DNA of 64,000 nucleotides from Eutreptiella sp. 'Long Island Sound 2002' (GCA_964036045.1 OZ038378.1:147126001-147190000), one strand, 5' to 3'. Shown: positions 38,592 to 64,000, numbered from the stretch's first letter. The notes: a model not told the origin generated them from the sequence alone. Numbers and translations: made by a program.

Positions 38592-47665
<9,074 letters not shown>

Positions 47666-47710
47666 GGCAATCAAGTGCGGGAGGGTGACGGTCGACACCG
47701 TTGAAAATCC

Positions 47711-47730
47711 TGGGAACAAGGCAGCAGCGG
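47711..47730 (-). promoter_or_regulatory. Candidate splice or trans-splice acceptor upstream of the MTRR ATG
   Basis: CTGCTGCCTTGTTCCCAG ends 45 nt before the ATG at 47665. Confidence 0.45.
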
Positions 47731-49397
47731 GTACAACGCCCCTTCCAACAGATCACAGCTGAAGGGAGCCCTGCTGATTGGAGGTCTCGTGTTTGTTGTT
47801 GTGTTGGCACACCCGGTCCCAAGTGAGCTCTGGAGCGACAGCTCGGTTCAAAGGGCACAGAAAATGAGAAGAAATGAAGTTGGCAAATGCACATTTCGTA
47901 TGAGGCTACACGGAACCTCGACTACAAGAATGCATCCGGTGGAATCCTTGGGGGTCGCCCCGGTGGAATCCCTGGCAGTCACCCTGGTGTAAAACCCGCC
48001 AGTCCCGACGGTTGCCCGGCGGAGGCCCCCATGGTCACCCTAGCGGAATGCGCACGAGAAAGATGCCGTGTGACACAACGAAATTTAGCTCCAATCAAGC
48101 CGGTGACATACGGAATCAAATGCACAGTCACATGTGGAATGCCATATTATAATGCATACCTCACTCCCTCTTGTGCAAAGAATGAGACGGTTTGCGAAAG
48201 CACAAGAGAAATGCTTCAGAATTTGGGACAGTGCAAGGAAAGTGTCCAACACCGGCGTAACCGGCGATGGTAATAGTATAAAACAGTGTGAATACAACAG
48301 CACCCAGCTGTCGCGATTGCCCATACCTGACGCAGACATGACCACGACTCAAGGGTGCTTAACCAGCCACTGATCGAACACGAGGTTTTCACTGCTCCCC
48401 ACGGCCCCTCAAGCTGGGATTGTCGCCTCACACATATTCAAGTGTGCAAGAGTTCTCCAGCTATGTACATACAGAGATGCTTTCGCTGGCACATTTGCGG
48501 CCTTCTCCTTCTGCACTGGATGTTGTGTAACTCTCCCTAATCCTAATGCTCTCTCCCTCGGAGACCTGACAACCTAAACTAACCGTGGTAAGAAAAGATC
48601 GCATGGCTGGCCAAGGTGGGGGCTTGCCCCACCTTGCCCTGCTTGTGCCTTGTGTGCGCTCAGGTGGGCGCTATGATGACCTCTTCCTCGGGGGCAGTGC
48701 GCAGCTTTGTGCACTTGCACCCAAGCCTTATATAAATAGTGGCGTAAGGCCATTTGACCAGTGACCAGCTCCTTGTATATTGGGCTGTAAATTTTTGTTT
48801 TTACCCCAACTTTTTCAACAAAATGTTTGCAAAAATGGATCCTTTTGATGATTCTTGTGACCCCTATTCGGATCCTCATGACCAAATCATGGGAAACATT
48901 TTTCTGCATGCCATAGGTGCTTTTGATCACCATATATCCTTTGCATATATGTTTTGGCATGTGCACGCCCTGCCCTGCACCGCCCTGCACTGCCCTGCAC
49001 CCTCCTGCACTGCACTCCAGGACTCCTGAACCACAGTCAATCACAGTATTTGCAGGCCCCTTGGGGGCACGATGATGGCCCACGGCCGCGCTTATAGCGC
49101 CACATAGTGCAATGTTCACCCCTCCCGGGCGAGCAGTCCCCAGGAGGTACACTCAGCAAAATAACATCAGCTGTACAGTACAAGGGGGGGGGGGGTCTGC
49201 CTCAGTCTTAGCCTCAGCCACTGCACCCCCCCCCTCCCAAAACCTCAGTTTTTATGGAAAACTTCGGTTTTGGCATGTGCACGCCCTGCCCTGCACCGCC
49301 CTGCACTGCCCTGCACCCTCCTGCACTGCACTCCAGGACTCCTGAACCACAGTCAATCACAGTATTTGCAGGCCCCTTGGGCAAAAATTTTTGACTG

Positions 49398-51176
49398 TCA
49401 CCCACCCATCCAGGCAGGGAGGGGGGCTGTGCACGGGCAGACCGCCTTGTCGCGGTCCGCAATTGCTCCCCACGCTGCCCACTGTGGCGAATGGACCCAC
49501 AGGCGCTCCTTGGCAGCCGCCTCGATCACCGCTGCTCTGCCCCCCCTCCCGTCCCACGCTCTACTGATGGAGTCCGCTGGGTTGAGCTCGGACTGCACCC
49601 AGCACAGGGTCACCTGCAGCCCCGTCCAGCGGAGACGGTGCGCAATCCTTCGTAGGATGCGCTGCTGCTGGACCCTGCCTGCCCCCGCCCTCCCCCAAAG
49701 CAGCTGGGCCAGCGCCCCCATGTTGTCCCCCACGAGCACGAGGCGCCGCGCTCGCCGCGCGTGCGCATCGTCCAGCGCCACCAGCGTCCCCCATAGCTCA
49801 GCCGCTTGCTGGGTTGTCACCCACGCTGGACATAGCGCCGGATCTGCCCCCCCCGGTCCCCAAGAGCCGACGCAGTAGGAGGGGTTAGCTCCTGTGGTCA
49901 GGGCATACCTGGCGGCGTCCACAAAGACGCGCACTGCCGGGCCAGCGCTCGTGGTGTCTGGCTCCCAGCCCCTGTAGCACTGGGCCATGGCCTCGCAGAG
50001 CCCGCGCACCACTGCCGGTGGTGTGCGCCAGGCCCAGCGTGGGCCCCAGCGCAGCCAGGACCGGGCACCCGCCAGAAAGCAACCCCCCAGGTTCCCTGGC
50101 CTCCCCAACCACCCGAGCTTCCCTAGTAGCCGCCTCAGGGCGACATAGGTGTATGGCTTAAGTGCCAGCTTTACCCATGCCGCCACCACTGCTGCCACCG
50201 CCGAAGCCGCCGGTGCCACCCTGCGCCCACGCAGATCTACATCCTTGCCCATCCACCGCAAGGAGCGCTGCGGTGTGCACACGGACTTCTCACTAATGAT
50301 GAAGCCCGCACGTCGGAGGAGGTGGGCCGCGCTGTCGGTGACCGCGGCCACTTCCCCCGGGTCATGTCCGACAAAAAGGATATCATCTAGGTACTGTACC
50401 ACCACCACCCCCCCCCCTCCCCAGATCCCCCAGCAGGTCCGAAATGAGGGCCTGAACCAGCCCAGGCGCCTGGTGCCAGCCAGCCAAAAGGCACCCGCAG
50501 AAAAGCGTACGTGCGCCCCTGGGCTGCCACCCGGATGGTGCTCGCCAGGGGGGGGGGAGCTCCACACTCCAATAGCAGTTTGCTATGTCCAGTTTGGTGC
50601 CCCACAGCCCCCCCCCCCCCCGGCCCTGCCCCCCCTTTTTCCCAGATCCCTGAGGAGGACCGCCAAGCCCTCCAGCGACGGGAGCTTAAATGGGCGGGCC
50701 TTGTACTTGCACCCCTTGTTGAACATCTTCATGTTCACAATGAGGGCGCATTTGCGCTCCGATTTCCACTTGACGAACACCTCCGCATTTGCATCCCCCC
50801 CCACCACGCTGACCAGGCCTTGGGACGCTAGGGTGGACAGGAGGGCCGCCACTCGTGGGCAGCGGGAGGGGGGGAGGGGATGGACACGCCCCCCCGCCCT
50901 GCCAAACTCGGGGTCAGCCCAGTCCTCCCACACGTGCGCCGGGACCGACACACGGCCCGCGTCGCCCAGCCCACGCGCAGCGAGCTCCACAGTGACGCGC
51001 GACTGGTCGTTAAGGCGCGTCGAGGATCCCCCATCGAGCGGGATCTCACCCCCCGCCAGGAGGTGCAGCGCCTCCTCAGCCAGCGCCAGGTCTGCGGCCG
51101 CCGCCCGCTCCTTCCACACTGGGCGATCCACAGCCCACTTGATAGACTCCGCCCACCACGCCTGCAGGAGGGATAG
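49398..51176 (-). pseudogene. Reverse transcriptase + RNase H of the YR element (frameshifted)
   Basis: VFVKWK..KCALIVNM..FN...PFKLPSL, KLDIANCYWSV, YAFLRVPFGW, YLDD, VFVDAA, AAELW, GDNM and WVQSELNPADSISR. Frame breaks occur in C/G runs (~50545-50625) and at a 4 bp duplication (~50475). Confidence 0.9.
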
Positions 51177-52643
51177 GACACTGTCAGCGGGGGGCCTTCA
51201 AGCTGCGTCCCATGTGGCGCGATGCTGCCTCCAGGTGGTCGTTCCAGTCGAGGCCGCACCTGGCGCACCGGGCAACCGCCAGCTGCATCTCCAGCCGCCC
51301 CGCTGCGCCGTCTCGCCGGCGCCCCTCCGGGTGCTTGGGTGCCTCTGGTGCTGGCTCGGGCCAGCGTGACCCGGGGCACCGTCGTGGAACGGGGAGCTGC
51401 TGCGGGTTGGCGGTCGGCTGCTCCAACAGCGGCGTGCTTGGGCTGGGGCTTCGGGGCGGGTGCAGCCCTCGTCGCCCGCGCTGCGGGTGCCGATCGGCCG
51501 CGGGCCACGGTTCGGTGCACATAGGCCCTGCGCTGGCTTTCGCGGGGGTGCCGAGCGGCCCTGCGTGCCACCGTGTCGGGCGACTCGTCACTAGAGGAGC
51601 CCAGTACGATGGTGTCCCGCATGTCGGAATCGCTACGCAGGTCGGCCCCTTGGCTGCCACGGTTCCCAGCGCGGACATCGGGTGGGGCCGGGGCGGCGTC
51701 CGTCCCGCCGGGGCCACGGGGCCCAAGCGTGCCGAGCGCCCAGAGCTGGTACGCGTGGACCGGCCGGATTTCGACGCCAAATCCCGCCGTGGGCCAGGGC
51801 ACGTTGTCGGGCAGGAAGAATTCCCACCCAGGGGGCGCGCTGGCGTACCTGTTGGCCTCCGCCTCGTTGTCCCATCGCCCAGCCACCGCGATGCTGGCGA
51901 TGGCGGCTCTGAACGCCCGCATGGCTCCTCCACGTCTCCAGGCGTGCCATCCCATGGATTCCCATCCCGTGGCAGCCAGCAAGCCATGGATCGCTGCCTG
52001 AAGGTCGAACGCGGCAGCCATGAGCGGCACCGATGCGGGCCTGCTGGAGACCCACGGGTGGGCTGCCATCGCCGCGCGCCATGCATCGGGCCATGCCCCC
52101 AGTCGTACTGTGACCCAGTCGTCGTCCTTTTTGTCATCGAAGAACCCCAACGTGCACCGCGTCCGGATGTCCACGGGTCGTACGCTGGCTGCTTCACCCA
52201 CCCTGAGGAGAGTGGCAAAGGAGATGACGGCAAGTCCCAGGCAGAACCTGTCGAGGGTGGTCCTGATGTTCCGGGCCATGAGCCGGAGGGTGACCAGCTC
52301 GGCCCACACTTGGGTTGGTCGTGGCGCGGCAGTGGTGGTCGCGGCGCCTCGTGCCATGAGCCAGTGTACGGGCCGCACAGTGGGTGGTTATGCAGCCCAG
52401 CTTCTCTGCCAGGCGGAGGGCGGATATGACGCCTCGCAGCGTCCCAGGCTGCTGGCCCATGGCGGCGCGCCTGACGAGGTACCGGGACAGTGCCCCCGCT
52501 GCGTCCAGCTCGGGCCAGTGCGCCGCGAACCGGCCCACATCCCTGAAGATCGCGGTCCAACGCTCCACGGTACCCGGGGACCACCGCCGGATGGCCAGCG
52601 CGAGGAGCTCCTCCATGTAATTGCCCCACCATAGGCTGTCCAC
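50828..52643 (-). pseudogene. Tyrosine recombinase of the YR element
   Basis: N-terminal helical domain (MEELLALAIRRWSPGTVERW...LRGVISALR), a +1 frameshift at ~52390, then LLRVGEA, WHAWRRGGA, GRW and ANRYA (R, H-x-x-R, W, Y catalytic pattern). The long C-terminal tail overlaps the RT start. Confidence 0.88.
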
Positions 52644-52789
52644 TGCCGACCCCGCGTATCGCAGGTTGAGCGCTCCGCCTCCCTCGTCATCGGCGCTCCC
52701 CTCGCTGGCGGGCCGCTCGCCGCCGTGGGCACTGGGCCCTTCAGCAGTTGGCCGGCGCTGGGGCCGGCCCGGCCGGAAAGGGCTGGGGG
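52343..52789. repeat. 447 bp direct duplication, copy D2 (copy D1 at 59308-59754)
   Basis: Constant offset of 6965 bp. Three substitutions were seen by eye. Confidence 0.95.
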
Positions 52790-53220
52790 ATCAATGGTCG
52801 GTTCTGATAGACTGAATGTCCCCGCCATAGACAATTCCAGCCATTAGTCCAGCAGTACTGCGAAATCCAATCAATGCACGTGTCCCCTTCTTGGTTGGGG
52901 TGCTCCACTATGTAAAATACAGCGAGGCGTTGCGGTTAGCTCCGTGGGTCACTTGTGTGCTTGTCCTTTGCTGCCGACTCTAGCGAACAACCTGGATCAA
53001 TATTAGCCTTCGTCCATAAATGTGGACTGCATTCACTGTGTCACATGCGAGCTGACTGGGTTGCAAAGCATGGCACTCATTCGGCCTTACCCCGTCTGTC
53101 GCTGTTTAGTTTCAAAGAGTGAAGGGAGTAACATACATTAAGGCTCAGAAATCAGAATGCGTTACAGATGCATGTGTGCCATGTGGCTGTGTGCTTATGG
53201 GATCATATTTCTGGTGAGGT

Positions 53221-53290
53221 GCCCCGTGCCTCAGTGGAAGCACCCTGGATTCCAGCGGCGCTGGTCCCAGGTTCGAGCCCCACTGCCCGA
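53221..53290 (+). pseudogene. tRNA-like module 3' of the LINE ORFs, opposite strand
   Basis: GTGCCTCAGTGGAAGCA...GGTTCGAGCCC gives A/B-box similarity, but there is no clean cloverleaf. Confidence 0.4.
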
Positions 53291-53579
53291 GCCGCGGAGG
53301 CTCGGGCAAGGGCAAGCAACGGGTGGGGTGGCAGCCACCCATCGGGCGTGGGCGGTGGCGGGACGCACTGCTGCAGGTGGCCGAGAACATTTTGCTAGTT
53401 GATGATGGTATATGTAACTAAAACAGCGCATTAAGAAAATGGACCAGGCCAATGTGAAAAAATAGATAGAAACGGGAGGGGCCCCAGTCCCCTGTCGGGC
53501 GAGGCCGGTGGGGGGGAGCACTGCTACAGGCCGGGTTCGAACCGGCGGTCTACGTGACGACATCCGACGATGTTAACCA

Positions 53580-54491
53580 CTATACCACACTGCCTCCCAT
53601 ATTGTCTTTGTAAGGGGAAAAATTCAAAACTTGCACAATCGAATCCAGCTCGGCGACAGTGGTCCTGCGCTGTCGCTTGGTGGGAGGGGTGTACGTGGGC
53701 ATGATGAAGTCCCGCGACGGGGTCTTAAGTACAGGGCATCTGGGATGGGAGAGCCTTCCCTGTTCAGCCAATCTATCAGCTTCGTTGTTCCCTAGAATGT
53801 CCACATGGGACGGCACTTTAATAAACTTGATGGAGCCTGTGTGTGTACTGAGGGTGTCCAGAAGAAGTTCCCAGAGAGGAACGTTAGAAAACGGACCGCT
53901 GCTTCCCGTCCATCCCCTGAGTTTCCACCGGCGCGCCGCGCCAGTGGCTCCCAGGAAGACGTACTCACTGTCTGTGCAAATAGCGACTTTACCAAAAGAG
54001 AGGATTTGCAATGCCCGAACCACGGCCAGGAGTTCTGCCGTGTTGTTTGTCTGCCGGAAGTGTACCGGGACATATGCAGAGATGCTGATGTCAGGGTGCG
54101 CGTAGATGCCATATCCTGCTACCCGGCCCACACCTTCCGTTTCGGCGGATGAGCCATCCGTGAAAACCAGGGTGTATCCGTCCGCGGAGAGGGTGTCAAA
54201 AATTCCTTCCAGCTCCGCCGCCCGTTGCTGTTTGCGCAGTCGGCGCGCCGTTTCTTTGCGTTGTTTTTTGCTGGGCGGGGGAGTGGGAGGTGTGACACGC
54301 AGATGGGGGTGTTGTAGCACTCCATCATGGAGTAGCGGCTGTAGCGCTCCGATGAAAAGATGCAGGTCATGATCAGAAATAGGGATGCTCGATGGACATG
54401 TAGCCCATAGTTTCAAGGTGGCAATCCAAATAGAAACAAAGCGGGACCAGGTAGCTGAATATTGTCGTTGGTATTTTTTCTTTTGGCGGAC
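53580..54491 (-). CDS. RNase H1-like domain, in frame with ORF2 after a single TAG
   Basis: FTDGS, QTNNTAEL, TDSEY, W..RGW....N..LW and VPSHVDILGNNEADRLA. The frame is open from 54491 to 53580. Confidence 0.9.
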   Translation of the reverse strand, partial: VRQKKKYQRQYSATWSRFVSIWIATLKLWATCPSSIPISDHDLHLFIGALQPLLHDGVLQHPHLRVTPPTPPPSKKQRKETARRLRKQQRAAELEGIFDTLSADGYTLVFTDGSSAETEGVGRVAGYGIYAHPDISISAYVPVHFRQTNNTAELLAVVRALQILSFGKVAICTDSEYVFLGATGAARRWKLRGWTGSSGPFSNVPLWELLLDTLSTHTGSIKFIKVPSHVDILGNNEADRLAEQGRLSHPRCPVLKTPSRDFIMPTYTPPTKRQRRTTVAELDSIVQVLNFSPYKDNMGGSVV

Positions 54492-57400
54492 CTACCAATT
54501 GGCGTATACCGCCGCCCAGGCCAGGAAGCCTGTCGGGCATTGAAAGGAAAACTGAAGGAAGGAGGAAAGCAGGGCGGTTGGACGTTCCTCTACAGTGGCC
54601 GTGGGAAAGCATTTGGTAATAGTGTCAAAAGCGACTTTGAGCAAGGAGCACTCCGTGCGTGCGTGGTCGATTGTCTCTAGCTCACCGTCAATTGGGCACC
54701 ACACGTCATCCGGTTTCCAATCTTTTTGCCGCTCCCCCACAGGGAGGCGGAGCCATAGCACCTGTCTGATGAAGTCTTTGTGGTGTGCAGGAAAGTTGAA
54801 AAGGTGAAAGGCCTTCCATACCTCAGGTGGTTGCCTTGGTGCCAGGGAGGTAGTGGAACAGAGGAACAAAGCCATGGATTTTGTGGTCCATCGAGACCAC
54901 CCATCCGCTCCCGGAACCGGGTGGAGGGGTGGGTTCGTGGGTGCCTGGCCGAGATTTGCGGAGTGATAATGAAACACTCCCTGCTGATAAATGCTGGCCC
55001 AAGTGGGTGCGATCTGCGAAATATGTGTGCTGTTGTTGATTAAATCTCCCACTGTAATGACCCCCTGCCGGATAAGCTGGGGGCAATAGTAGGTGAGGGA
55101 TGCTGACTGGGAAAACAGTCTGTTGTGCCAGAGTGGAGTGTCAGACGATAGTGCTTCAGGTCGGTTGAAAGTCACTTTGGCAGTGACGAGTGAATATGCT
55201 CGTGCGCTCCAAGCCAGATAAGGCATTTTGTGCCAAGCCACATTGCTCCCCATTTGAAAAGTGTGGAGCGTGGACGGGGAGACATTTATGCCATACTCAG
55301 TGGCAAAACGCTCATAAGGCTCGGTGACACATTTAGGAATGGCCTCGGCCTTGTAGACACGACGAATAAAGATAGTGGAAAATTGCCAAAGCAAGAAAGT
55401 GTCAGGGGGGGCCAGCTCGAGCCCCCCATGCTCTTTGCTGTGTGACAGGATGTCTAGTGTAATGCCCCAGTTGCTGAGCTTGAGGGCAACCCGATAAATT
55501 GTTTTGACCGCGGCGATGACATTGTTTGTAGGGTAGACAACACGAGACGGGTAGACCAAAAGTGGGAGAATCCAGCTTTGGAGGAGTTCCACCCTTTCAG
55601 CGAGTGAGAGGGACCACGACTGCATGGAAAACGCACGACCTGTGGCTTTTCTGAGTGCAGGTCCATAGGCCTCCTCCGCTGTGGTAGCCCCAAGGACAAT
55701 GCCCAGGTACTTGTATTTGTCGACTATTCTGAGGCCTGTGCTCAGGAGCTGAACCCTGTGTATGGGGTCCCAATGCCCCTTGAGCAGAATGTTGGACTTG
55801 TCCAGGTTTGTGTACAAACCTGTAACTGTTGAGAATTCCTGAACCCTGCTCCAGACCAAGAGGAACACCCTTGTCCCAGTGGTGGGGTCGCATTCAATTA
55901 TGATGATTAAGTCGTCTGCGTAGAGCAGAACTTGCACATGTTCTGACAAATCCATAAGTTTGTGGATGATTGGGGAAATGAGCATGGCAAATATAGTCGG
56001 TGAAAAGGGGCACCCCTGTCGTACACCCGAACGGGGGAGAATTTTGTGGTCTGTGTAAATGTGATCACGGACAAGGACACAGATTGGCGCTGTAAACAGC
56101 AGTAAACATAGGGAAATTAGACAGTCTGGCAATTGCATTAGATTAAGAAACGTGCGGGTATACTCATGAGAAACAGAATCAAAGGCCTTTTTGAAATCGA
56201 TGGGACAAAATAGGGCGTCCCCCGGGGAGTTCCAGGAGCCAAAAGTATGCCACAGATTCGTGAAAATGGACCGTCCCCTGATAAAACCTCGTTGCTGGAT
56301 AGGGGTGAGGGCATCAATGTAATCTTTGAGTTGCAGGGCAAGAATGGCTGCTACCCATTTGTGTGAAGTGTTTTGCAGCACCAAAGGCCGTAGATTGTGT
56401 ACTGAAGCGGTCCCAAGTCCTTTCGGAATGGGATTAAGAAGTGCCAAGGACCAATCATCGTTGAGTGTGTTGGAGTCCAGAATGCCCTTGTAAATGTCAA
56501 GCATAAGAGGGCAACAGAAATCCGAGAAGGCCTTGTAGATGGAAACCTGTACCCCATCAATTCCGAGTGCCGAGGTGCCGTTCAAGGACTCCAGCGCGGC
56601 GTGCACTAGGTCCAGTGACAGCGGTTGTATCAGCATTTTTGCCATCAATGCTGTGTTTTTGCCATGGAAAAATGTTTTGAGGTAAGGCTTCACCTCCATT
56701 TGTGATTTTCCGGAGGGGTTCATTGTTTGTTGCCAATAGGAAACAATTTCAGAGACCATGGACTCAGGGTCGGGCAGAAGCTGGCCGGACCTATTGCGCA
56801 AAGAGTATAGTTTTCGTTTGAATTGTAGTTGTTTGGTGAGTCGCCAGATTTCTTGGCGGCGGCGCCATGGTTGCAAATGATGTGGGTCGTGTAGGGTAGT
56901 TTTTAGCTTATCCAAAACCTGCTGCCCTGAACGGTCGGTGTCGGACCGTTCGGCCAGGGCTGTTAAAATTTGATAAGCCGCTTTGGCGGATGAGGGGGTG
57001 TACCCGTGATCCTTGAGGTAGCGCCAGGCCTCTTCCGAAAGGTGATGCGTAGGAGAGACCATCAAGAGAGATTGCAGTTCCGTGATGCCTGTGGCTCTGT
57101 TGGCCTTCTCATGGGAGAAAGCTGCAGTTTTGATACATTCCAAACCGTCCGCCCACTTGGAGTAACCTTCAGTGTTGATGGAGTGCAGTTCAGCCTGTAG
57201 TTGTTGGAGGGTGTCCTCCGAGGATAAGAAAGATGTAGGGATTCTGAGTCGCTTCCCTTGCTTGGTAGGCTTGGCCGACAGTGAGGCCATAACTGCCTTG
57301 TGGTCCGAATTGGCCACAAAACGGGTATAGCACTCTACCACGGAGTTTTGGAAATTCTCGTGAAGGAGAATTCTATCGATCCGTCGTCTCCTGTCAAGGA

Positions 57401-58202
57401 CGGGGGCGCACTCGTTTGCGGCTAGGTCGGGCCTAGCCGACGTAGTCGGCTTGGCCGGGGCAAAGCCCCATGTCCAGCCTTCTAAATCAAAATCGGAGTG
57501 TCTGCCACTGTGGAAACATGCATATGTGTCGATGAGCTGATGGTTCGTCATAAAATCAAGTTCCGCTTCACGGGCGGCGATGACAGTGGAGTGCTCAGAA
57601 GATAGATGCGGTGCAGAAATGTCCCTTGAGGGGACTGTGACCGAATTGTGGTCGGACAGATAGATGGTGTCTCCCGGGACGAGAGTGGGCGAGACTTGCG
57701 AGAGCAAGGTCCATTGGCGCTGCCTTTCGACTGCGTCATGATGAAAATGATAAACACAGAAATGGTGCTTGACCCCATCGGGGTCAGCCAGCTGAGCAAA
57801 AAGGTGGCGTTTTTCAATGGCATACGAATTCAGGAGTGTCCAGGTGTTGTGAAAAATCAGTGCCGATCCCCCTCTACCTTTGGGGCTCAGGTTGGAAAGG
57901 AGGACGAACCCCCAGTCCTTAAACCGTTCAGTAAGCTGCTCAAGGCATTGTTCATCCTTGATGTGCGCTTCCTGAAGCCCCATTACATGTACGGAGTTAC
58001 GATACAAAAAACGGCATATCTGGACCTGCCTATCTTCCGAAAAGTTGTCGCTGACGGGGACCTTGGTGGTCAGCCCGTTGGCGTTAAAAGTGGCTACCTT
58101 GGTGTGTGCTGCGGCATAAACCACTGGCTGTTGGTTGTCTCCTGTCGGACGCCCAACCGCTGGTGGTTGGTGGTGTGCTGGATTTTGTGAATGTGACGTC
58201 AT
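54492..58202 (-). CDS. LINE ORF2, 1236 aa: AP endonuclease, reverse transcriptase, C-terminal zinc finger
   Basis: TFNANGL, LQEAH, RIDRIL, SDHKAV (APE). PIPK..RPL, QRGF, IDFKKAFDSVSH, GVRQGCPFSP, YADDL (RT). CPIDGELETIDHARTEC (zf-RVT-like). Confidence 0.97.
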   Translation of the reverse strand: MTSHSQNPAHHQPPAVGRPTGDNQQPVVYAAAHTKVATFNANGLTTKVPVSDNFSEDRQVQICRFLYRNSVHVMGLQEAHIKDEQCLEQLTERFKDWGFVLLSNLSPKGRGGSALIFHNTWTLLNSYAIEKRHLFAQLADPDGVKHHFCVYHFHHDAVERQRQWTLLSQVSPTLVPGDTIYLSDHNSVTVPSRDISAPHLSSEHSTVIAAREAELDFMTNHQLIDTYACFHSGRHSDFDLEGWTWGFAPAKPTTSARPDLAANECAPVLDRRRRIDRILLHENFQNSVVECYTRFVANSDHKAVMASLSAKPTKQGKRLRIPTSFLSSEDTLQQLQAELHSINTEGYSKWADGLECIKTAAFSHEKANRATGITELQSLLMVSPTHHLSEEAWRYLKDHGYTPSSAKAAYQILTALAERSDTDRSGQQVLDKLKTTLHDPHHLQPWRRRQEIWRLTKQLQFKRKLYSLRNRSGQLLPDPESMVSEIVSYWQQTMNPSGKSQMEVKPYLKTFFHGKNTALMAKMLIQPLSLDLVHAALESLNGTSALGIDGVQVSIYKAFSDFCCPLMLDIYKGILDSNTLNDDWSLALLNPIPKGLGTASVHNLRPLVLQNTSHKWVAAILALQLKDYIDALTPIQQRGFIRGRSIFTNLWHTFGSWNSPGDALFCPIDFKKAFDSVSHEYTRTFLNLMQLPDCLISLCLLLFTAPICVLVRDHIYTDHKILPRSGVRQGCPFSPTIFAMLISPIIHKLMDLSEHVQVLLYADDLIIIIECDPTTGTRVFLLVWSRVQEFSTVTGLYTNLDKSNILLKGHWDPIHRVQLLSTGLRIVDKYKYLGIVLGATTAEEAYGPALRKATGRAFSMQSWSLSLAERVELLQSWILPLLVYPSRVVYPTNNVIAAVKTIYRVALKLSNWGITLDILSHSKEHGGLELAPPDTFLLWQFSTIFIRRVYKAEAIPKCVTEPYERFATEYGINVSPSTLHTFQMGSNVAWHKMPYLAWSARAYSLVTAKVTFNRPEALSSDTPLWHNRLFSQSASLTYYCPQLIRQGVITVGDLINNSTHISQIAPTWASIYQQGVFHYHSANLGQAPTNPPLHPVPGADGWSRWTTKSMALFLCSTTSLAPRQPPEVWKAFHLFNFPAHHKDFIRQVLWLRLPVGERQKDWKPDDVWCPIDGELETIDHARTECSLLKVAFDTITKCFPTATVEERPTALLSSFLQFSFQCPTGFLAWAAVYANW

Positions 58203-58206
58203 TAGG

Positions 58207-59307
58207 TCATGTTGGCTGCTTCACAGTTTGTGCGTAAGAGGGCTTTTTGGACTCAGCAGAAGCTGGTTTTTTCCTGTTGGCCATGGATTCACGCTTGAGA
58301 TTATTAAACTCATCTATGGGGATGATGGAAATTGAAATTTGTTTAGCTTCGTCATGAAGCATGACGCTTTGGTTTGCGGAGGCAAATTTGCCTTTTATTC
58401 GCCATGCGGCGGTGGAAAAGCGTCCCGGGTTCCATGTTGACCGGACCGCTGATTCAGCATGAAAACCGTTTTCATTGAGGAAAAACAATAGGGCTGGGCC
58501 CTGTAACCAAATGGGAACGTCATAAACGACTTTTAGATCAGAACGCCCCTCCGGTGAGGACGAGGCGGAAGAGGCGGAAGAGACTGACTCCGTGTCGGAT
58601 TTCCCTTTGAACCAGTCACGCTGGCGTTCGTCCTTGAACAGTAGGCCATTGGCCTTCATTTGGACATAGGGGCCAGATATGAACTGCTCAGTGGCGGACT
58701 CAGTGGAAAGGCCCAACCGCAGTTTGTTAAACCCGGTGACCTTCAGATACGTAGGGTCAGAAATATCAGAGAGAGCTTGCTTGACATTGCGCCAGAGATG
58801 TTTGGCGTAGTTTTCCTTGTGGGTCTTCTTATAGAAGACATCGAGAACGGTGTGGCAGTGAGGGAAAATAGAGCCGTCGAATTCCGACATGCTCATAAGT
58901 GCGAAAAAATCCAACTTTTTAAAATCAGCAGTGAAGATAGCGCACTGTGGTGCATCAAGATTGACCAGAAAGATTTTTGATTGTATGCCTTGCTGTCTCA
59001 GATTGACCGGTCCCGGAATGTTGAAACATTGGGACCCGGTCATGCCTAGCTTCAGCATTGTTTGTGTCATATCCTTTTCCGACATATGCACCGCATGGGA
59101 GTGGAGAGGGGACTCCGGCAACTGGCAGGGTTTGCGGTCCAGGCTTCGCCCCTGGGATAGCAATCTCGTAGAGAAACGGGCCGGTTCCAGCCTTTGATCT
59201 ATAGAAGTAGCAGTGTGCAGAATAACGAAAAAATCCCTGGGGTGTCCATCAGTGTCCTGTAGCTGTCTGGAAAGTCTTGAAAACGCCTGTGGCGTACAAG
59301 GTACTGT
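58207..59307 (-). CDS. LINE ORF1 (start uncertain, possibly 5'-truncated)
   Basis: Open frame of about 365 codons ending in TGA 4 nt before the ORF2 ATG, with a basic C-terminus. No recognised motif. Confidence 0.7.
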   Translation of the reverse strand, partial: TVPCTPQAFSRLSRQLQDTDGHPRDFFVILHTATSIDQRLEPARFSTRLLSQGRSLDRKPCQLPESPLHSHAVHMSEKDMTQTMLKLGMTGSQCFNIPGPVNLRQQGIQSKIFLVNLDAPQCAIFTADFKKLDFFALMSMSEFDGSIFPHCHTVLDVFYKKTHKENYAKHLWRNVKQALSDISDPTYLKVTGFNKLRLGLSTESATEQFISGPYVQMKANGLLFKDERQRDWFKGKSDTESVSSASSASSSPEGRSDLKVVYDVPIWLQGPALLFFLNENGFHAESAVRSTWNPGRFSTAAWRIKGKFASANQSVMLHDEAKQISISIIPIDEFNNLKRESMANRKKPASAESKKPSYAQTVKQPT

Positions 59308-59585
59308 GGCGCCTCGTGCCATGAGCCAGTGTACGGGCCGCACAGTGGGTGGTTATGCAGCCCAGCTTCTCTGCCAGGCGGAGGGCGGATATGACGCCTC
59401 GCAGCGTCCCAGGCTGCTGGCCCATGGCGGCGCGCCCGACGAGGTACCGGGACAGTGCCCCCGCTGCGTCCAGCTCGGGCCAGTGCGCCGCGAACCGGCC
59501 CACATCCCTGAAGATCGCGGTCCAACGCTCCACGGTACCCGGGGACCACCGCCGGATGGCCAGCGCGAGGGGCTCCTCCATGTAA

Positions 59586-60750
59586 TTGCCCCACCATAGG
59601 CTGTCCATTGCCGACCCCGCGTATCGCAGGTTGAGCGCTCCGCCTCCCTCGTCATCGGCGCTCCCCTCGCTGGCGGGCCGCTCGCCGCCGTGGGCACTGG
59701 GCCCTTCAGCAGTTGGCCGGCGCTGGGGCCGGCCCGGCCGGAAAGGGCTGGGGGGGCGGGGCAGGCGGTGCCGGGCACGGGCCGCCCACGGCCCAGTGGT
59801 TGCGGCCGCATCGAAAACATGGGTACGGGGGGGGGGCCAGTCGCGTCATAGGTGCGGCCCGTGCTGTGCGCAGTGTACAGGCTCTGGCTACCTACGGTAC
59901 TGAACCCCCCCCGGTACGAGCCGGCGACGGAACTTGCGACGGAAGGGGCCCGCCCCTGCCCACCACTGGCACAGTCCCTGGCGCAGTGCCCGTGCATGCC
60001 ACAGCGGAAGCATGCCCCGGGCGGAGCAGGGGCCGGGGTCTGCGCCTGAGGTGACGGCTGCGTCTGGGCCTGTTGCGGTGCAGGCTGCTGGGCCTGGGCG
60101 TACCATCCCTGCGGCGCTGGCCGTGTCGCTGCCCCAGCGGGGTGGGTGGGCGCGGGCTGGCAGTCCCTGTAGACCACCTTCCACACCGCCACCACAAGCG
60201 CATTGCCCTTCCCCATGGGGTCCTCCGTTTTGAGCCAGGTGTTCAAGGCCTGGATGAGCTCCTGCTGCCAGAGCCAGGGGTGCTGCCCAGAAGCTATTTT
60301 GGTGAGCTCTCCCTGAGACAGGGGTGGTACCTTTGGCAGCTGGAGCTCTCGGATGCGAGCCTCGAGCCGTCGTATCTCCGCCTGCTCCGCGGTCTCCTTC
60401 GGCTCCTGCGACTGATGGTCCCGCGGCGGCTCCTCCTGCTGCTCCCGGGCAGGCGGACTGGGTTGGGGTACTGCCTTCCACGCAGCCGCTTCGACGTCAA
60501 GCCGCAGGTTTGAGGAGCGCTCAAAGAGGGCCATGTATATCAGGGCCGTTGGGGCGTCAAGGCCGCCGCCAGCCCACTCCACAGCCCGTTCAACGCCCGC
60601 CACGGACAGGCCATCCTCCATCAGGCGCTCTTGGTACTGGGCGGCCATGATGCCAGCGTCCGCGCTGTCGAGGAACCCGTACGCGGTAGCCGCAGCAATG
60701 TCGCGCCACCGCTCCCAGCGCGCGTACTCGGGGGTCTTGACGGGGTCCTG
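59586..60750 (-). CDS. gag-like ORF of the YR element with zinc knuckle(s)
   Basis: Coiled-coil-like EIRRLEARIRELQ and CFRCGMHGHCARDC (59971-60013). A second CFRCGRNHW appears after a frame slip in the G run at ~59830. Confidence 0.8.
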
Positions 60751-62418
60751 GTTTGGTCTAAATTCACATCAGCCAACAAGCAAAAGCACATGCACACAGA
60801 AAACGATAAGTAGCGTCGGTATGCGAGTCTGGCCATCGACATACAAAATATAAAAGACAACTGAGCGGACAATCAGTGCAGACACATATACACCCAATCC
60901 TGCACAGACCAAACTTGGGTTTGCTTATGGCAAACCTCATTCCATGTCGTCCCGATTGAAGGCCAGCCTGGCCCGCTTCGCCCCGCGGCTTTCCCCACTG
61001 GCCGCTTCCGCTGATCCATTTGAGGTACCCTCTGGCATTTAAGCAGTCCCCAGGAGGTACACTCAGCAAAATAACATCAGCTGTACAGTACAAGGGGGGG
61101 GGGGTCTGCCTCAGTCTTAGCCTCAGCCACTGCACCCCCCCCCCTCCCAAAACCTCAGTTTTTATGGAAAACTTCGGCTTTGAGTGTTTATTTCTGCTTC
61201 TTTTTTGCCATCACTGTTTTGTTCTGGGAGAACTCTGATGGTATGTAAATTTTGTTGTGTTGTGTTGTTGTGATGGTTTCCGTTTGTCAATGTTTATCTG
61301 TGGGGTATTTTCCATAGAGCCTTGTATATTTTTGTCGGGGCCGTTGTTCTTGGTGCGGTGTGGTTTGCATGTTGCTGTTTGTTTTTTCAAGGAACCACCC
61401 GCTGGCGAATGCAAGTGGCGAAGAGCGGCAGCGACACTCGGGAAGTGCATCCAAGTAGCACCTTCGGGTGCAACTAGGCCGAGGGGACGCATCCATAGAT
61501 CAACACCCATCCCAAGGACTGGGATAGGAAAAAGGGTCTGAAAGGCACCCAGGATGAGAAGAGAGGGGGAAATTGTGAGTTGCACAACCAAGGGGCGCAC
61601 AACCTTCGGTAAACAATGCGCGGAGCACCAAGGAACATCAATAGACAACCGTGGTTGCTAAAAAACAACGATGACAAGGCGTACACAAAGAACTATTGTG
61701 CTCACCAGTGTTGGACGGAATGGACAAGAAAAAACGACACAAACACCTACCCAAAATGGCAAGAAACACACAAAATGCACAACAAGGCGGCCCAAAACCT
61801 TCACCAAGCAATGCACGAATATGAAAAAACACAAATATACATCAATCTACATCGATACACATTGGTGGGCCCCCAAAATCTGGTGTTTTCGGAAAATAAA
61901 CGTAAATATACGTATACTTTTGATTTGACCAGTGCCACGACCACCATTGAATTAAAGCTTGCTTGAACCTTGGGACGGGGCTATCACTGAAATCAGCGCT
62001 TTAGTCCTCCCTGTCACTAAAAAGGACCCGTTCCACCGGTTCCGCAGGTTTAGGGTCTAGTACAGACTGCAAGCGTAGGTAGAGGGTTGGGAGGCCGGCG
62101 ACGGGGTTTCTTTGTCCCTGGACTTTTGGTAGGCTTCCGTCATGGGTTCTCAGCCCAGTGCCTGCCAAACTGCTCTAGGTGACGGTGTGGCCTGGGGCAG
62201 TGGGGTCCTCAGCACAGTAAAGAGTGTTGGCAAGGACGGGGCTAGAGAAATTGCAGCATCATGAGATGAGCCATCGGAACTTGCTTGGTCTGGGTTATTG
62301 AACAATGCCATTGCCAGAGGGCAATCTATCTCTATATCATAAATTGACAGTCATGGCCTGTAATGTTTATCTGGAGCTGGCGGGCTTGGTTCGCCCCGTG
62401 GGTCCTCTTTTTCTGGTA

Positions 62419-63191
62419 CCCCCCCCCCCCTTGTATAAGCTACGCCAATGTACGGAATTATTACGGTCCCTACGCCTACTGTAGCTTGGACACGGGCGTA
62501 GCTTACGCGCAATAAATACAACTACTGACACACACGTGCGCGCGCGCATGGTATGAGTGCCCCTTGACCTCCGCCCACATTACCAAGTGCATGCAAACAC
62601 AAGAAGGCCTTGGGAACATGAAAGTTTCAGGTTTACACAAATGTTGGCACAAGCAATGAGGAATGCGAAGCCTACAAATGTTCGGCTCGGAAACCCTTCT
62701 TGCGATCATACACCATGCGGAACAATTGCACATGCTCACCACTTGAAGATGCCTTTGGCTGAGGCTTAGGGGCTGGTTTGGGCTTGGGCAACGTCAAATT
62801 CTTGGGAATGAAATTGCCTTGCATGTGGTCCCTTGTAAATTGGTCCCCCTTTTCTGATGGTCCCTTCATTGTAGCATCCACACGGTCACCGGTGGAACGT
62901 GTGAAAATAACTGGACGGCCAGGTTCAAAAAGAGAAGATTGCATGGTGAGCTGATGCAAGAAAGGGGAATATAAAGCACAAATATTCCCAAAATCAGAGC
63001 CATGTGGGTTGAAGTGGGTGAAGGCTTACAACAAATGTGTCCATGGCTCCATCTAATTGGCAAATGTGTCACCAAACCCATGTCTTTTGTGGCCGCACTA
63101 CATACCGTACGCAATTAAAATTACGTACACAATTATTACAGTCCCTACGCCTACTGTAGCTTGGACACGGGCGTAGCTTATACAAGGGGGG
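62419..63191. mobile_element. MITE-like element with 21 bp perfect TIR, longer member of the 6481-6843 family
   Basis: CCCCCTTGTATAAGCTACGCC ... GGCGTAGCTTATACAAGGGGG, with an internal direct repeat GTCCCTACGCCTACTGTAGCTTGGACACGGGCGTAGCTTA. Confidence 0.8.
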
Positions 63192-64000
63192 CCATGAGGC
63201 AACGGAAACTGGGTTCGCATACGCCCCCGTGTCACAGGCGCATGGTCATAACCACAATTGTTCAATGTCTTGCTTGCTGCACTGCAGCGTAGACCAGTTC
63301 TGTACCACACCAGGTGGTTTCTGACTGTGCATTGGCTCTGCTCCTCTGGACAGTGAGGTCAGCTCGCACCCACCACCCACCCGCAGTGCCGGTTAGACTC
63401 TAACCCGTGCCCTGCTGGTCGTGCCCCTGGCTTGCACTCTTTCCCTGGCACGTAAGGACGTGTCGTTGTCGTGCCCCTGGGGCGCAAAGGCGCCTGTGTT
63501 GGTGCAAAGGTCTCTACACTTCAGCATGTGCTCCTGCCGTCAGGTGTCTCAACAGTTCATTGCTCTACCGTGTGTGGCGTCTACCTTTTTCGCTCGACAC
63601 CATTCATGCGCATGCTGTCCTTTTTTTCTTGCCCACTGGCTTCCAGCTGCCTCACGTGGGCCGCACTCTCGCAGCCCCTGTCATGCTTGGGCTGTTCAAC
63701 ACGTGACGACGTGTCGAGCCTGTGGCTCAGGGGCGCTACGGCGCCCTGCTTTTTCATTTCTTGACTGTTCCATGCTGCCGTGGCGTCCCATTTACCCTGG
63801 TCAGCTCGAACCCACCACCCTCCCTTTGCGCCGGTTAGCCCCGGTCTCTTGCTCTGTGGGTCTCTCTCCTACTCTCTCCCTCCCAATCTCTCTTGCTCTC
63901 CCCTGCTCTATCTCTCGTGTTGCTCCTCTCTGTTCCTTTCCCACTGTGCTCTACCCTCTCTCTCTCTCTTTCTCTCTCCCTCTCTCTCGCGCCCAAAAAA

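Follow-up and report, generated by a model that had tools for sequence, protein, structure and literature searches.

In the searchable literature, retrotransposons that carry a tyrosine recombinase (YR) ahead of the reverse transcriptase (RT) have been described only in kinetoplastids, and almost nothing similar has been found outside them (PMC6681497). VIPER and TATE, which occur in trypanosomatids and Bodo with few matches elsewhere, combine a gag-like open reading frame (ORF), a YR ORF and an RT/ribonuclease H (RNase H) ORF with split direct repeats of the form A1..B1-A2-B2 (PMC6681497). Their RTs are monophyletic in the published phylogeny (Ribeiro et al., 2019, PMC6681497), and the paper defining their repeats gives no integration-site data (PMC6681497). 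For DIRS1-like elements, the proposed route of integration is recombination at a junction sequence of 3 bp, which leaves no target-site duplication (TSD) (PMC3266345). The present analysis concerns a YR-first element in a 64,000-nt stretch of the genome of the euglenid Eutreptiella sp. 'Long Island Sound 2002' (GCA_964036045.1, OZ038378.1:147126001-147190000), referred to below as the window; all positions are those of the whole 64-kb window, and the element is oriented along the minus strand.

The original prediction, made from the window sequence, described a delimitable YR retrotransposon at 48951-61182 with the YR upstream of RT/RNase H as in VIPER and TATE. The motif order in the window and in further copies bears this out, and the coordinates that it gave were all reproduced (Table 1). 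The locus very probably represents a young YR retrotransposon family of the DIRS order, present in several hundred copies in this euglenid, that lands without a TSD at targets resembling CAAAAC. Such a young, abundant family in a euglenid widens the host range known for the YR-first organization. The searchable literature contains no paper linking VIPER-type elements to Euglena; methyltransferase-bearing DIRS elements in Euglena, mentioned in a 2026 preprint, are of a different kind.

Organization, coding capacity and copies

Motif positions in the window give the minus-strand gene order gag, YR, RT, RNase H. The A repeats are 97.9% identical over 142 alignment columns (49132-49272 versus 61042-61182), A1 contains homopolymer runs of 11 G and 10 C, and the end of B1 in the element orientation reads ..ATGCCAAAAC. 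A scan of 47000-63500 turned up no pair of inverted repeats reaching 40 nt, and the element termini are direct repeats. The split repeats had originally been regarded as a Ngaro/PAT trait combined with the VIPER gene order; this description falls, as VIPER and TATE themselves have A1..B1-A2-B2 (PMC6681497). Judged from its layout, the architecture is wholly of the VIPER type and not a VIPER/Ngaro hybrid.

The window copy is frameshifted, and for this reason Pfam detected nothing of the host element in its own ORFs at E ≤ 0.01; domain calls were therefore made on intact ORFs of other copies (e.g. L001 and L006). The gag-like ORF of L001 contains a zinc knuckle (zf-CCHC, E = 3.7e-5, 24.1 bits versus a cut-off of 20.8). 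An exhaustive HMMER search with the YR ORF collected 241 homologues; in a 41-homologue alignment Arg241, Lys265, His327 and Tyr362 are at least 90% conserved. The profile built from these 41 sequences matches Cre (E = 2e-6), with the regions of Cre Arg173, His289, Arg292, Trp315 and Tyr324 aligned, while a phmmer search of the single ORF against PDB sequences gave no match, Cre being reached only by the profile. The AlphaFold (AF2) model of the YR has pLDDT values of at least 90 across residues 85-400, and its top PDB matches in Foldseek are Cre chains (best E = 4.7e-7 over ∼320 columns, TM score 0.55-0.63 normalized to Cre). The middle ORF is thus identified, from sequence and a predicted model, as a tyrosine recombinase having a two-domain Cre-like fold with the R, K, HxxR, W and Y residues that define the superfamily.

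The RT domain is recognized by RVT_1 (E = 1e-13 on L001 and 2e-12 on L006). Its motif C is YLDD in all subfamilies, with Asp248 and Asp249 invariant, and the D-E-D-D residues of RNase H are kept across five subfamilies of the host genome. The RT/RNase H structure model matches retroviral and Ty3 RTs with E values of about 1e-11; a BFVD fold search returned generic pararetrovirus, hepadnavirus and retrovirus RT/RNase H matches (hepatitis B virus protein P was sixth) that do not discriminate between families. No further ORF or Pfam match was found, and there is no methyltransferase domain; RNase H ends ∼25 nt before B1, leaving no space for one.

Searches of the genome returned 40 scored full-length matches at 91-98% identity both for a 431-bp block from the 3' terminus (from 512 first-look candidates) and for a 2,961-bp internal block (from 358). 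The first-look counts suggest at least 350 copies. A set of 20 further copies was fetched from 15 contigs and 18 of these were aligned, giving a mean pairwise identity of 96.9%. In 20/20 fetched copies the internal region bracketed by A1..B1A2-spacer-B2 is the same, as is the order of the conserved motifs. The element is therefore a multi-copy family, and A and B repeats independent of the YR ORFs, which would have contradicted the prediction, were not seen in this sample. Within single elements A1 and A2 are 98.7% identical and B1 and B2 are 99.0% identical (over the last 80 nt; a 10-nt indel differs between subfamilies), as fits renewal of the repeats at each transposition. The predicted length of ∼5.3 kb once the insert is removed holds for the window copy (5,267 bp without its nested long interspersed nuclear element, LINE) but not for the family, other copies measuring about 5.05 kb (5,015-5,093 bp); the window copy is longer because of a private 188-bp insertion.

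The YR-then-RT order is kept in distant relatives, down to a YR identity of about 25% (25-30%). These include the ENA gene calls P0020, P0214 and P0226 and the contigs L066, L068 and L053, and they derive from a second large assembly (ERZ25074135), two sequencing runs and one environmental metagenome. In divergent relatives YR and RT share one open frame or lie in overlapping ORFs, YR first; on one metagenome contig (P0065) gag is followed by YR and the third ORF is truncated. Taken together, these sequences indicate that the YR-then-RT order is old within the clade and that this type of element is diverse and extends beyond one genome. Nesting or misassembly, e.g. a Crypton-like YR gene lodged within an unrelated retroelement, might be supposed to have produced the order artificially, and the window copy does hold a nested LINE and a duplication. 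The comparison of copies refutes this explanation and leaves it a negligible probability: the same order and ends recur in 20 independent copies on 15 contigs, and the YR-first order is also found in the distant relatives from other assemblies and metagenomes. All proteins retrieved by homologue searches with RT/RNase H and with the YR profile were close ENA/JGI entries without names, and no named kinetoplastid protein was among the matches. A search of prokaryotic genome contigs for related loci, aimed at the contaminants in metagenome-assembled genomes that Ribeiro et al. mention, yielded no relative. In the published Euglena gracilis assembly 33% of the repeats are classed as 'unknown' (PMC11252322); the present family and its relatives may fall within this fraction.

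Element ends, target sites and integration

At its 5' end the element always starts with CGAAG, adjoining an invariant C, and the six bases before CGAAG differ between copies. The 3' end (...ATGCCAAAAC) reads CAAAAC in 19/21 copies, the other two being TAAAAC (L007) and CAAACC (L020). In the window, GTTTTG occurs at 48951-56 and 49267-72 and GCTTTG at 61177-82. The hexamer at 48951-56, at the end of B2, is element sequence, while 61177-82 is target DNA. The six-base core that had been proposed for both ends is not general, since the 5' hexamer is variable target DNA (19 copies). Nor does the proposed six-base overlap (GTTTTG) of B1 and A2 survive: A starts at CGAAG after the invariant C across the family, so that A2 and B1 abut or share a single base.

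The filled window site reads ATAT, element, GCTTTG-AGTG. Four paralogous empty sites read ATAT-GCTT(T/C)(G/C)-(A/G)GTG, with the hexamer present once, and one of them has exactly GCTTTG. Insertion therefore occurs without a TSD and the target hexamer is left only beside A1, in keeping with the original proposal that a B/A junction recombines with a core-like target. The insertion site of L020 is spanned uninterrupted by 12 paralogues, in agreement at lower resolution. The flanks of the window element (48750-48950 and 61183-61390) belong to a dispersed repeat with paralogues (73-83% identical) on many contigs; a second, more conserved repeat (91-97% identical) begins ∼200 bp beyond the element (61383-61482).

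The target base adjoining the element is C in 19/19 copies, and positions 4 and 5 of the target hexamer are A in 15 and 11 of the 19, amounting to a graded preference for AAAC. Compared with CAAAAC, target positions 1-5 give 50/95 matches (p = 4.7e-9, 19 copies), and there is no signal in the control six bases further upstream or in the 3' flank. An imperfect palindrome (CCAAAACC..GGTTTTGG) is whole only at the B1/A2 junction, its outer arm coming from the B end. Folded as single-stranded DNA, this junction has a predicted energy of -18.4 kcal/mol (z = -4.6), compared with z = -1.6 for the A1 end. On sequence, a target resembling CAAAAC restores part of the junction palindrome.

These features are consistent with a model in which the element would be transcribed and reverse-transcribed, the split repeats would allow its ends to join on the pattern of the internal B1/A2 junction, and the YR would recombine the joined junction with the chromosome. 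The joined B2/A1 junction would read ...ATGCCAAAAC followed directly by CGAAGTTTTCC... The three outcomes seen at the insertion sites, namely the lack of a TSD, fixed element ends (CGAAG... and ...CAAAAC) and landing directly 3' of a CAAAAC-like hexamer with its invariant C and AAAC preference, fit the accepted DIRS-order model of recombination between a short junction sequence and a target like it, with no duplication left behind (PMC3266345). The integration site, for which the paper defining the VIPER and TATE repeats offers no counterpart data, is directly readable here from the absence of duplication, the invariant C, the AAAC preference and a palindrome completed only at the B/A junction.

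Several observations weigh against this reading. No circular or joined B2/A1 junction was observed, so that both the circle and the role of the YR are inferred. The sequences read as empty sites, 73-83% identical, are paralogues and not alleles. Target sequence 3' of the exchange point shows no similarity to the element (27/114 matches versus 28.7 expected), which a textbook two-strand YR exchange with 6-8 bp of identical overlap does not predict. Pfam alone leaves both the YR (E = 0.27, sub-threshold) and RNase H uncalled. Finally, no fetched copy has been demonstrated with all three frames intact, and the four homopolymer runs at which the frames differ could be assembly errors.

The one-sided target homology makes room for a variant without a classical two-strand exchange from a double-stranded circle. 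Integration could instead proceed from a single-stranded or hairpin junction, with exchange of one strand followed by replication, or by microhomology annealing of linear cDNA. The similarity to the target is not only one-sided but graded, extending over one to five contiguous bases; across the exchange point homology is lacking, and the B1/A2 junction forms the strong single-stranded hairpin noted above. The exactness of the element ends in nearly all copies (CAAAAC in 19/21, the other two one base off) and the invariant adjoining C are better explained by a site-specific enzyme than by annealing and repair, and intermediates of either kind were not observed. This variant is considered unlikely.

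Relationship to other YR elements

Motif comparisons with known groups were made by eye on the supplementary alignments of PMC6681497; the RT xIDN and YR His signatures used below are our own reading of these alignments and not a published criterion. The Eutreptiella element resembles VIPER in having gag-like, YR and RT/RNase H ORFs in this order on one strand, a CCHC box in gag (as in the copies from T. cruzi, T. theileri and Leptomonas), split direct repeats comparable in length (173 bp for A and 219 bp for B in T. cruzi, 136-144 bp for A in C. fasciculata), the lack of a methyltransferase, an RNase H end of the type NPAD..SR and a euglenozoan host. It differs in its 66-bp spacer between A2 and B2 and in RT motif C, which is x(I/L)DN in the kinetoplastid elements and, in the euglenid, YLDD like that of DIRS and of retroviral/LTR-type RTs. 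The YRs of VIPER and TATE have a histidine before the catalytic tyrosine (GH(T)/KH..RYLG) and a box II reading IRKGA or SIKRGA, whereas the Eutreptiella element has a tryptophan (GRW..Y) and HAWRRGGA (HxxRRGGA). TATE elements of Leishmania braziliensis, Bodo saltans and other species share the ORF order, and those of L. braziliensis the A1..B1A2B2 repeats, but they have a much longer YR ORF, a gag without a CCHC box and a MIDN- or YIDN-like RT motif C. In Leishmania, TATE is associated with telomeres.

Ngaro elements (fish, fungi, Cafeteria and others) share the A1-[ORFs]-B1A2B2 repeats, the lack of a methyltransferase, similar YR motifs (LLRVGE, HSFRIGAA and GRW..Y) and a canonical RT xxDD (LLDD in DrNgaro1). 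Despite these shared repeats and the absent methyltransferase, assignment to Ngaro was rejected because the Ngaro gene order is gag, RT/RNase H, YR, with the YR downstream of RT/RNase H, while it lies upstream in all copies of the Eutreptiella element. DIRS1-like and PAT-like elements (including kangaroo) also combine a YR with RT/RNase H and have an RT motif YLDD(F/I)L(F/I), and the junction proposed for TSD-free integration of DIRS1-like elements is often AAC/GTT, comparable to the AAC preference observed here. They carry a methyltransferase domain and a YR after the RT (inverted in kangaroo), and DIRS1-like elements have inverted terminal repeats and internal complementary regions. With no methyltransferase, no inverted repeats of at least 40 nt and direct terminal repeats, the Eutreptiella element belongs to neither group. 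Cre and other tyrosine recombinases share the two-domain fold and the R, K, H-x-x-R, W and Y residues of the active site, and oomycete Cryptons share HSFRRGGA, but none of these has a linked RT and Cryptons lack split repeats.

The prediction of a VIPER/TATE-like family is thus upheld for the organization but not for kinship, as both RT motif C and the motifs of the YR active site conform to the DIRS/Ngaro/Crypton type and differ from all VIPER/TATE sequences compared. The YR-first order may be common to VIPER/TATE and the Eutreptiella element either by descent or by convergence. If by descent, the element would be a true VIPER-like member, the YR-first order and split repeats would have existed before euglenids and kinetoplastids diverged, and xIDN and His would be later changes in kinetoplastids. 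The identical organization (CCHC gag, three ORFs, A1..B1A2B2 and no methyltransferase) and a host in the same phylum as the kinetoplastids argue for this reading, as do two motif similarities. The VIPER/TATE alignment contains the C-terminal RNase H motif NPAD..SR 51 times, and the Eutreptiella element has it too, while DrNgaro1 reads NQADSLSR; a Bodo YR has VRRGGCMRLA, compared with RRGGAMRAF in the Eutreptiella element. It is opposed by YLDD in all host subfamilies versus x(I/L)DN in the VIPER/TATE sequences compared, by a YR with GRW..Y and HxxRRGGA like those of Ngaro, Crypton and Cre, and by the sampling of YR homologues, in which 0/30 were entries of NCBI or UniRef, the databases that would hold kinetoplastid proteins. 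Common descent in this form is a reasonable possibility that falls somewhat short of an even chance.

Alternatively, the YR-first order may have arisen independently in a Ngaro/DIRS/Crypton-type lineage of euglenids, the likeness to VIPER/TATE being convergent; this explanation comes close to an even chance without reaching it. In the published alignments, Ngaro, DIRS and Crypton sequences have counterparts of the RT sequence YLDDILFVG and of the YR motifs LLRVGE.., H..RRGGA and GRW..Y. Independent recurrence of structural features is known for YR elements, inverted YR domains for example having been gained twice (PMC4157794), and the evolution of these elements appears to be modular (PMC6681497). 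The case for convergence relies on by-eye motif comparison only, however; the host phylum, the full shared architecture and the NPAD motif favour common ancestry, and Ngaro or DIRS proteins were also absent from the sampled YR homologues. DIRS/Ngaro-type catalytic motifs in a YR-first element bear on the question of a single origin for the four YR-retrotransposon groups. It can be put forward tentatively, as a possibility rather than an expectation, that the euglenid families are a little-changed sister group of VIPER/TATE that has kept ancestral YLDD and GRW..Y motifs, the YR-first order predating the split of euglenids and kinetoplastids. Were this so, the VIPER-like group would be linked to recombinases of the Ngaro/Crypton type and a superfamily of unresolved relationships would be rooted; the hundreds of young copies with recoverable empty sites would then offer the best available system for studying YR target choice via the junction palindrome.

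The host, which had been characterized as non-trypanosomatid-looking, is a euglenid and belongs to the same phylum as the trypanosomatids. Genome-wide there are 5,458 occurrences, with at most one mismatch, of the 24-nt Euglena spliced leader and none of the reversed control, which marks the genome as Euglena-like. The occurrences are dispersed on both strands, and a GT donor follows directly 3' in the two loci read, L021 (C1:27992-31015) and L022 (C1:111846-114869), where the surroundings look like conserved units resembling spliced-leader RNA genes.

Features of the window copy and its surroundings

The features of the window copy are collected in Table 1. This copy is dead, being disrupted by frameshifts, the 188-bp insertion and the nested LINE.

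Table 1. Positions of the element and its component features in the window.
Feature	Position	Strand	Remarks
Whole element	48951-61182	minus	A1, gag-like, YR, RT/RNase H, B1-A2, 66-bp spacer, B2
B2	48951-49065	minus	3' terminal repeat, 115 bp
Spacer between A2 and B2	49066-49131	minus	Unique, 66 bp; found in all fetched copies
A2	49132-49266	minus	Internal copy of 5' repeat
Imperfect palindrome, 37 nt	49237-49273		Spans B1/A2 junction; 16-nt arms 88% complementary, 5-nt loop
B1	49267-49381	minus	Internal copy of 3' repeat; 115 bp, 100% identical to B2
RT/RNase H	49405-51155	minus	Frameshifted in window copy; RT motifs 51128-50376
RNase H D-E-D-D	49928-49569		VFVDAA 49928, QQAAELWG 49811, VGDNMGA 49733, LNPADS 49586
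RT YLDD	50396-50376		
Homopolymer runs in RT coding region (50408-50621)	50608-50621, 50548-50557, 50408-50417		Lengths vary
Tyrosine recombinase domain	51729-52677	minus	Frameshifted in window copy; ORF tail to ∼51187
YR GRW..Y	51880-51842		
YR HAWRRGGA	51946-51923		
YR FFDDKK	52144-52127		Motif with active-site Lys
YR LLRVGEA	52210-52190		R box
YR LWWGNYMEE	52634-52608		N-terminal; repeated in other duplicate at 59599-59573
447-bp duplicate, copy 2	52343-52789	minus	99.3% identical to 59308-59754
Nested LINE	52790-59307	minus	6,518 bp, bracketed by 447-bp duplicates of host element
LINE RNase H ORF	53580-54416		RNase_H 4.7e-27
LINE ORF2, APE + RT	54492-58202		RVT_1 5.7e-25
LINE ORF1, possible	58207-59343		
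447-bp duplicate, copy 1	59308-59754	minus	3' end of gag and 5' part of YR; element positions ∼1251-1696
Gag-like ORF	59704-61038	minus	ATG at 61038; CCHC 60012-59971; 3' end approximate, inside duplicate copy 1
Fourth homopolymer run	59827-59836		Gag/YR ORF overlap
Insertion within gag, 188 bp	60753-60940		Missing from L001 in pairwise blastn; private to window copy
A1	61042-61176	minus	5' split direct repeat, 97.9% identical to A2; 5' end of other copies too
Target-derived hexamer	61177-61182	minus	Plus strand GCTTTG, element orientation CAAAGC; adjoins A1

Frame differences between copies fall almost solely at four G/C homopolymer runs of 8-18 nt. Their lengths vary among the 18 aligned copies (e.g. 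G11-18), differing in nearly every one, and the frames of conserved motifs switch at the runs. Either the runs were misassembled or they are sites of slippage, at which ORFs could be fused or separated. The 188-bp insertion is AT-richer and breaks gag after ..GACGACATGGA.

The nested LINE has a weak Exo_endo_phos match (3.4e-4, under the Pfam cut-off) and a 3' end without poly(A). The direct duplication that brackets it (52343-59754), copy 1 of which was placed on the element by mapping to L001, is far longer than typical LINE target-site duplications.

Elsewhere in the genome, canonical Phage_integrase genes unrelated to the YR retrotransposon form dense clusters at C16:21.8-22.3 Mb, C25:20.65-20.97 Mb, C22:19.45-19.53 Mb and C23:11.93-11.99 Mb, with Pfam scores of 65-97 bits and open frames of 300-730 amino acids. 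These clusters, repeated on several contigs, may be part of large integrated elements.

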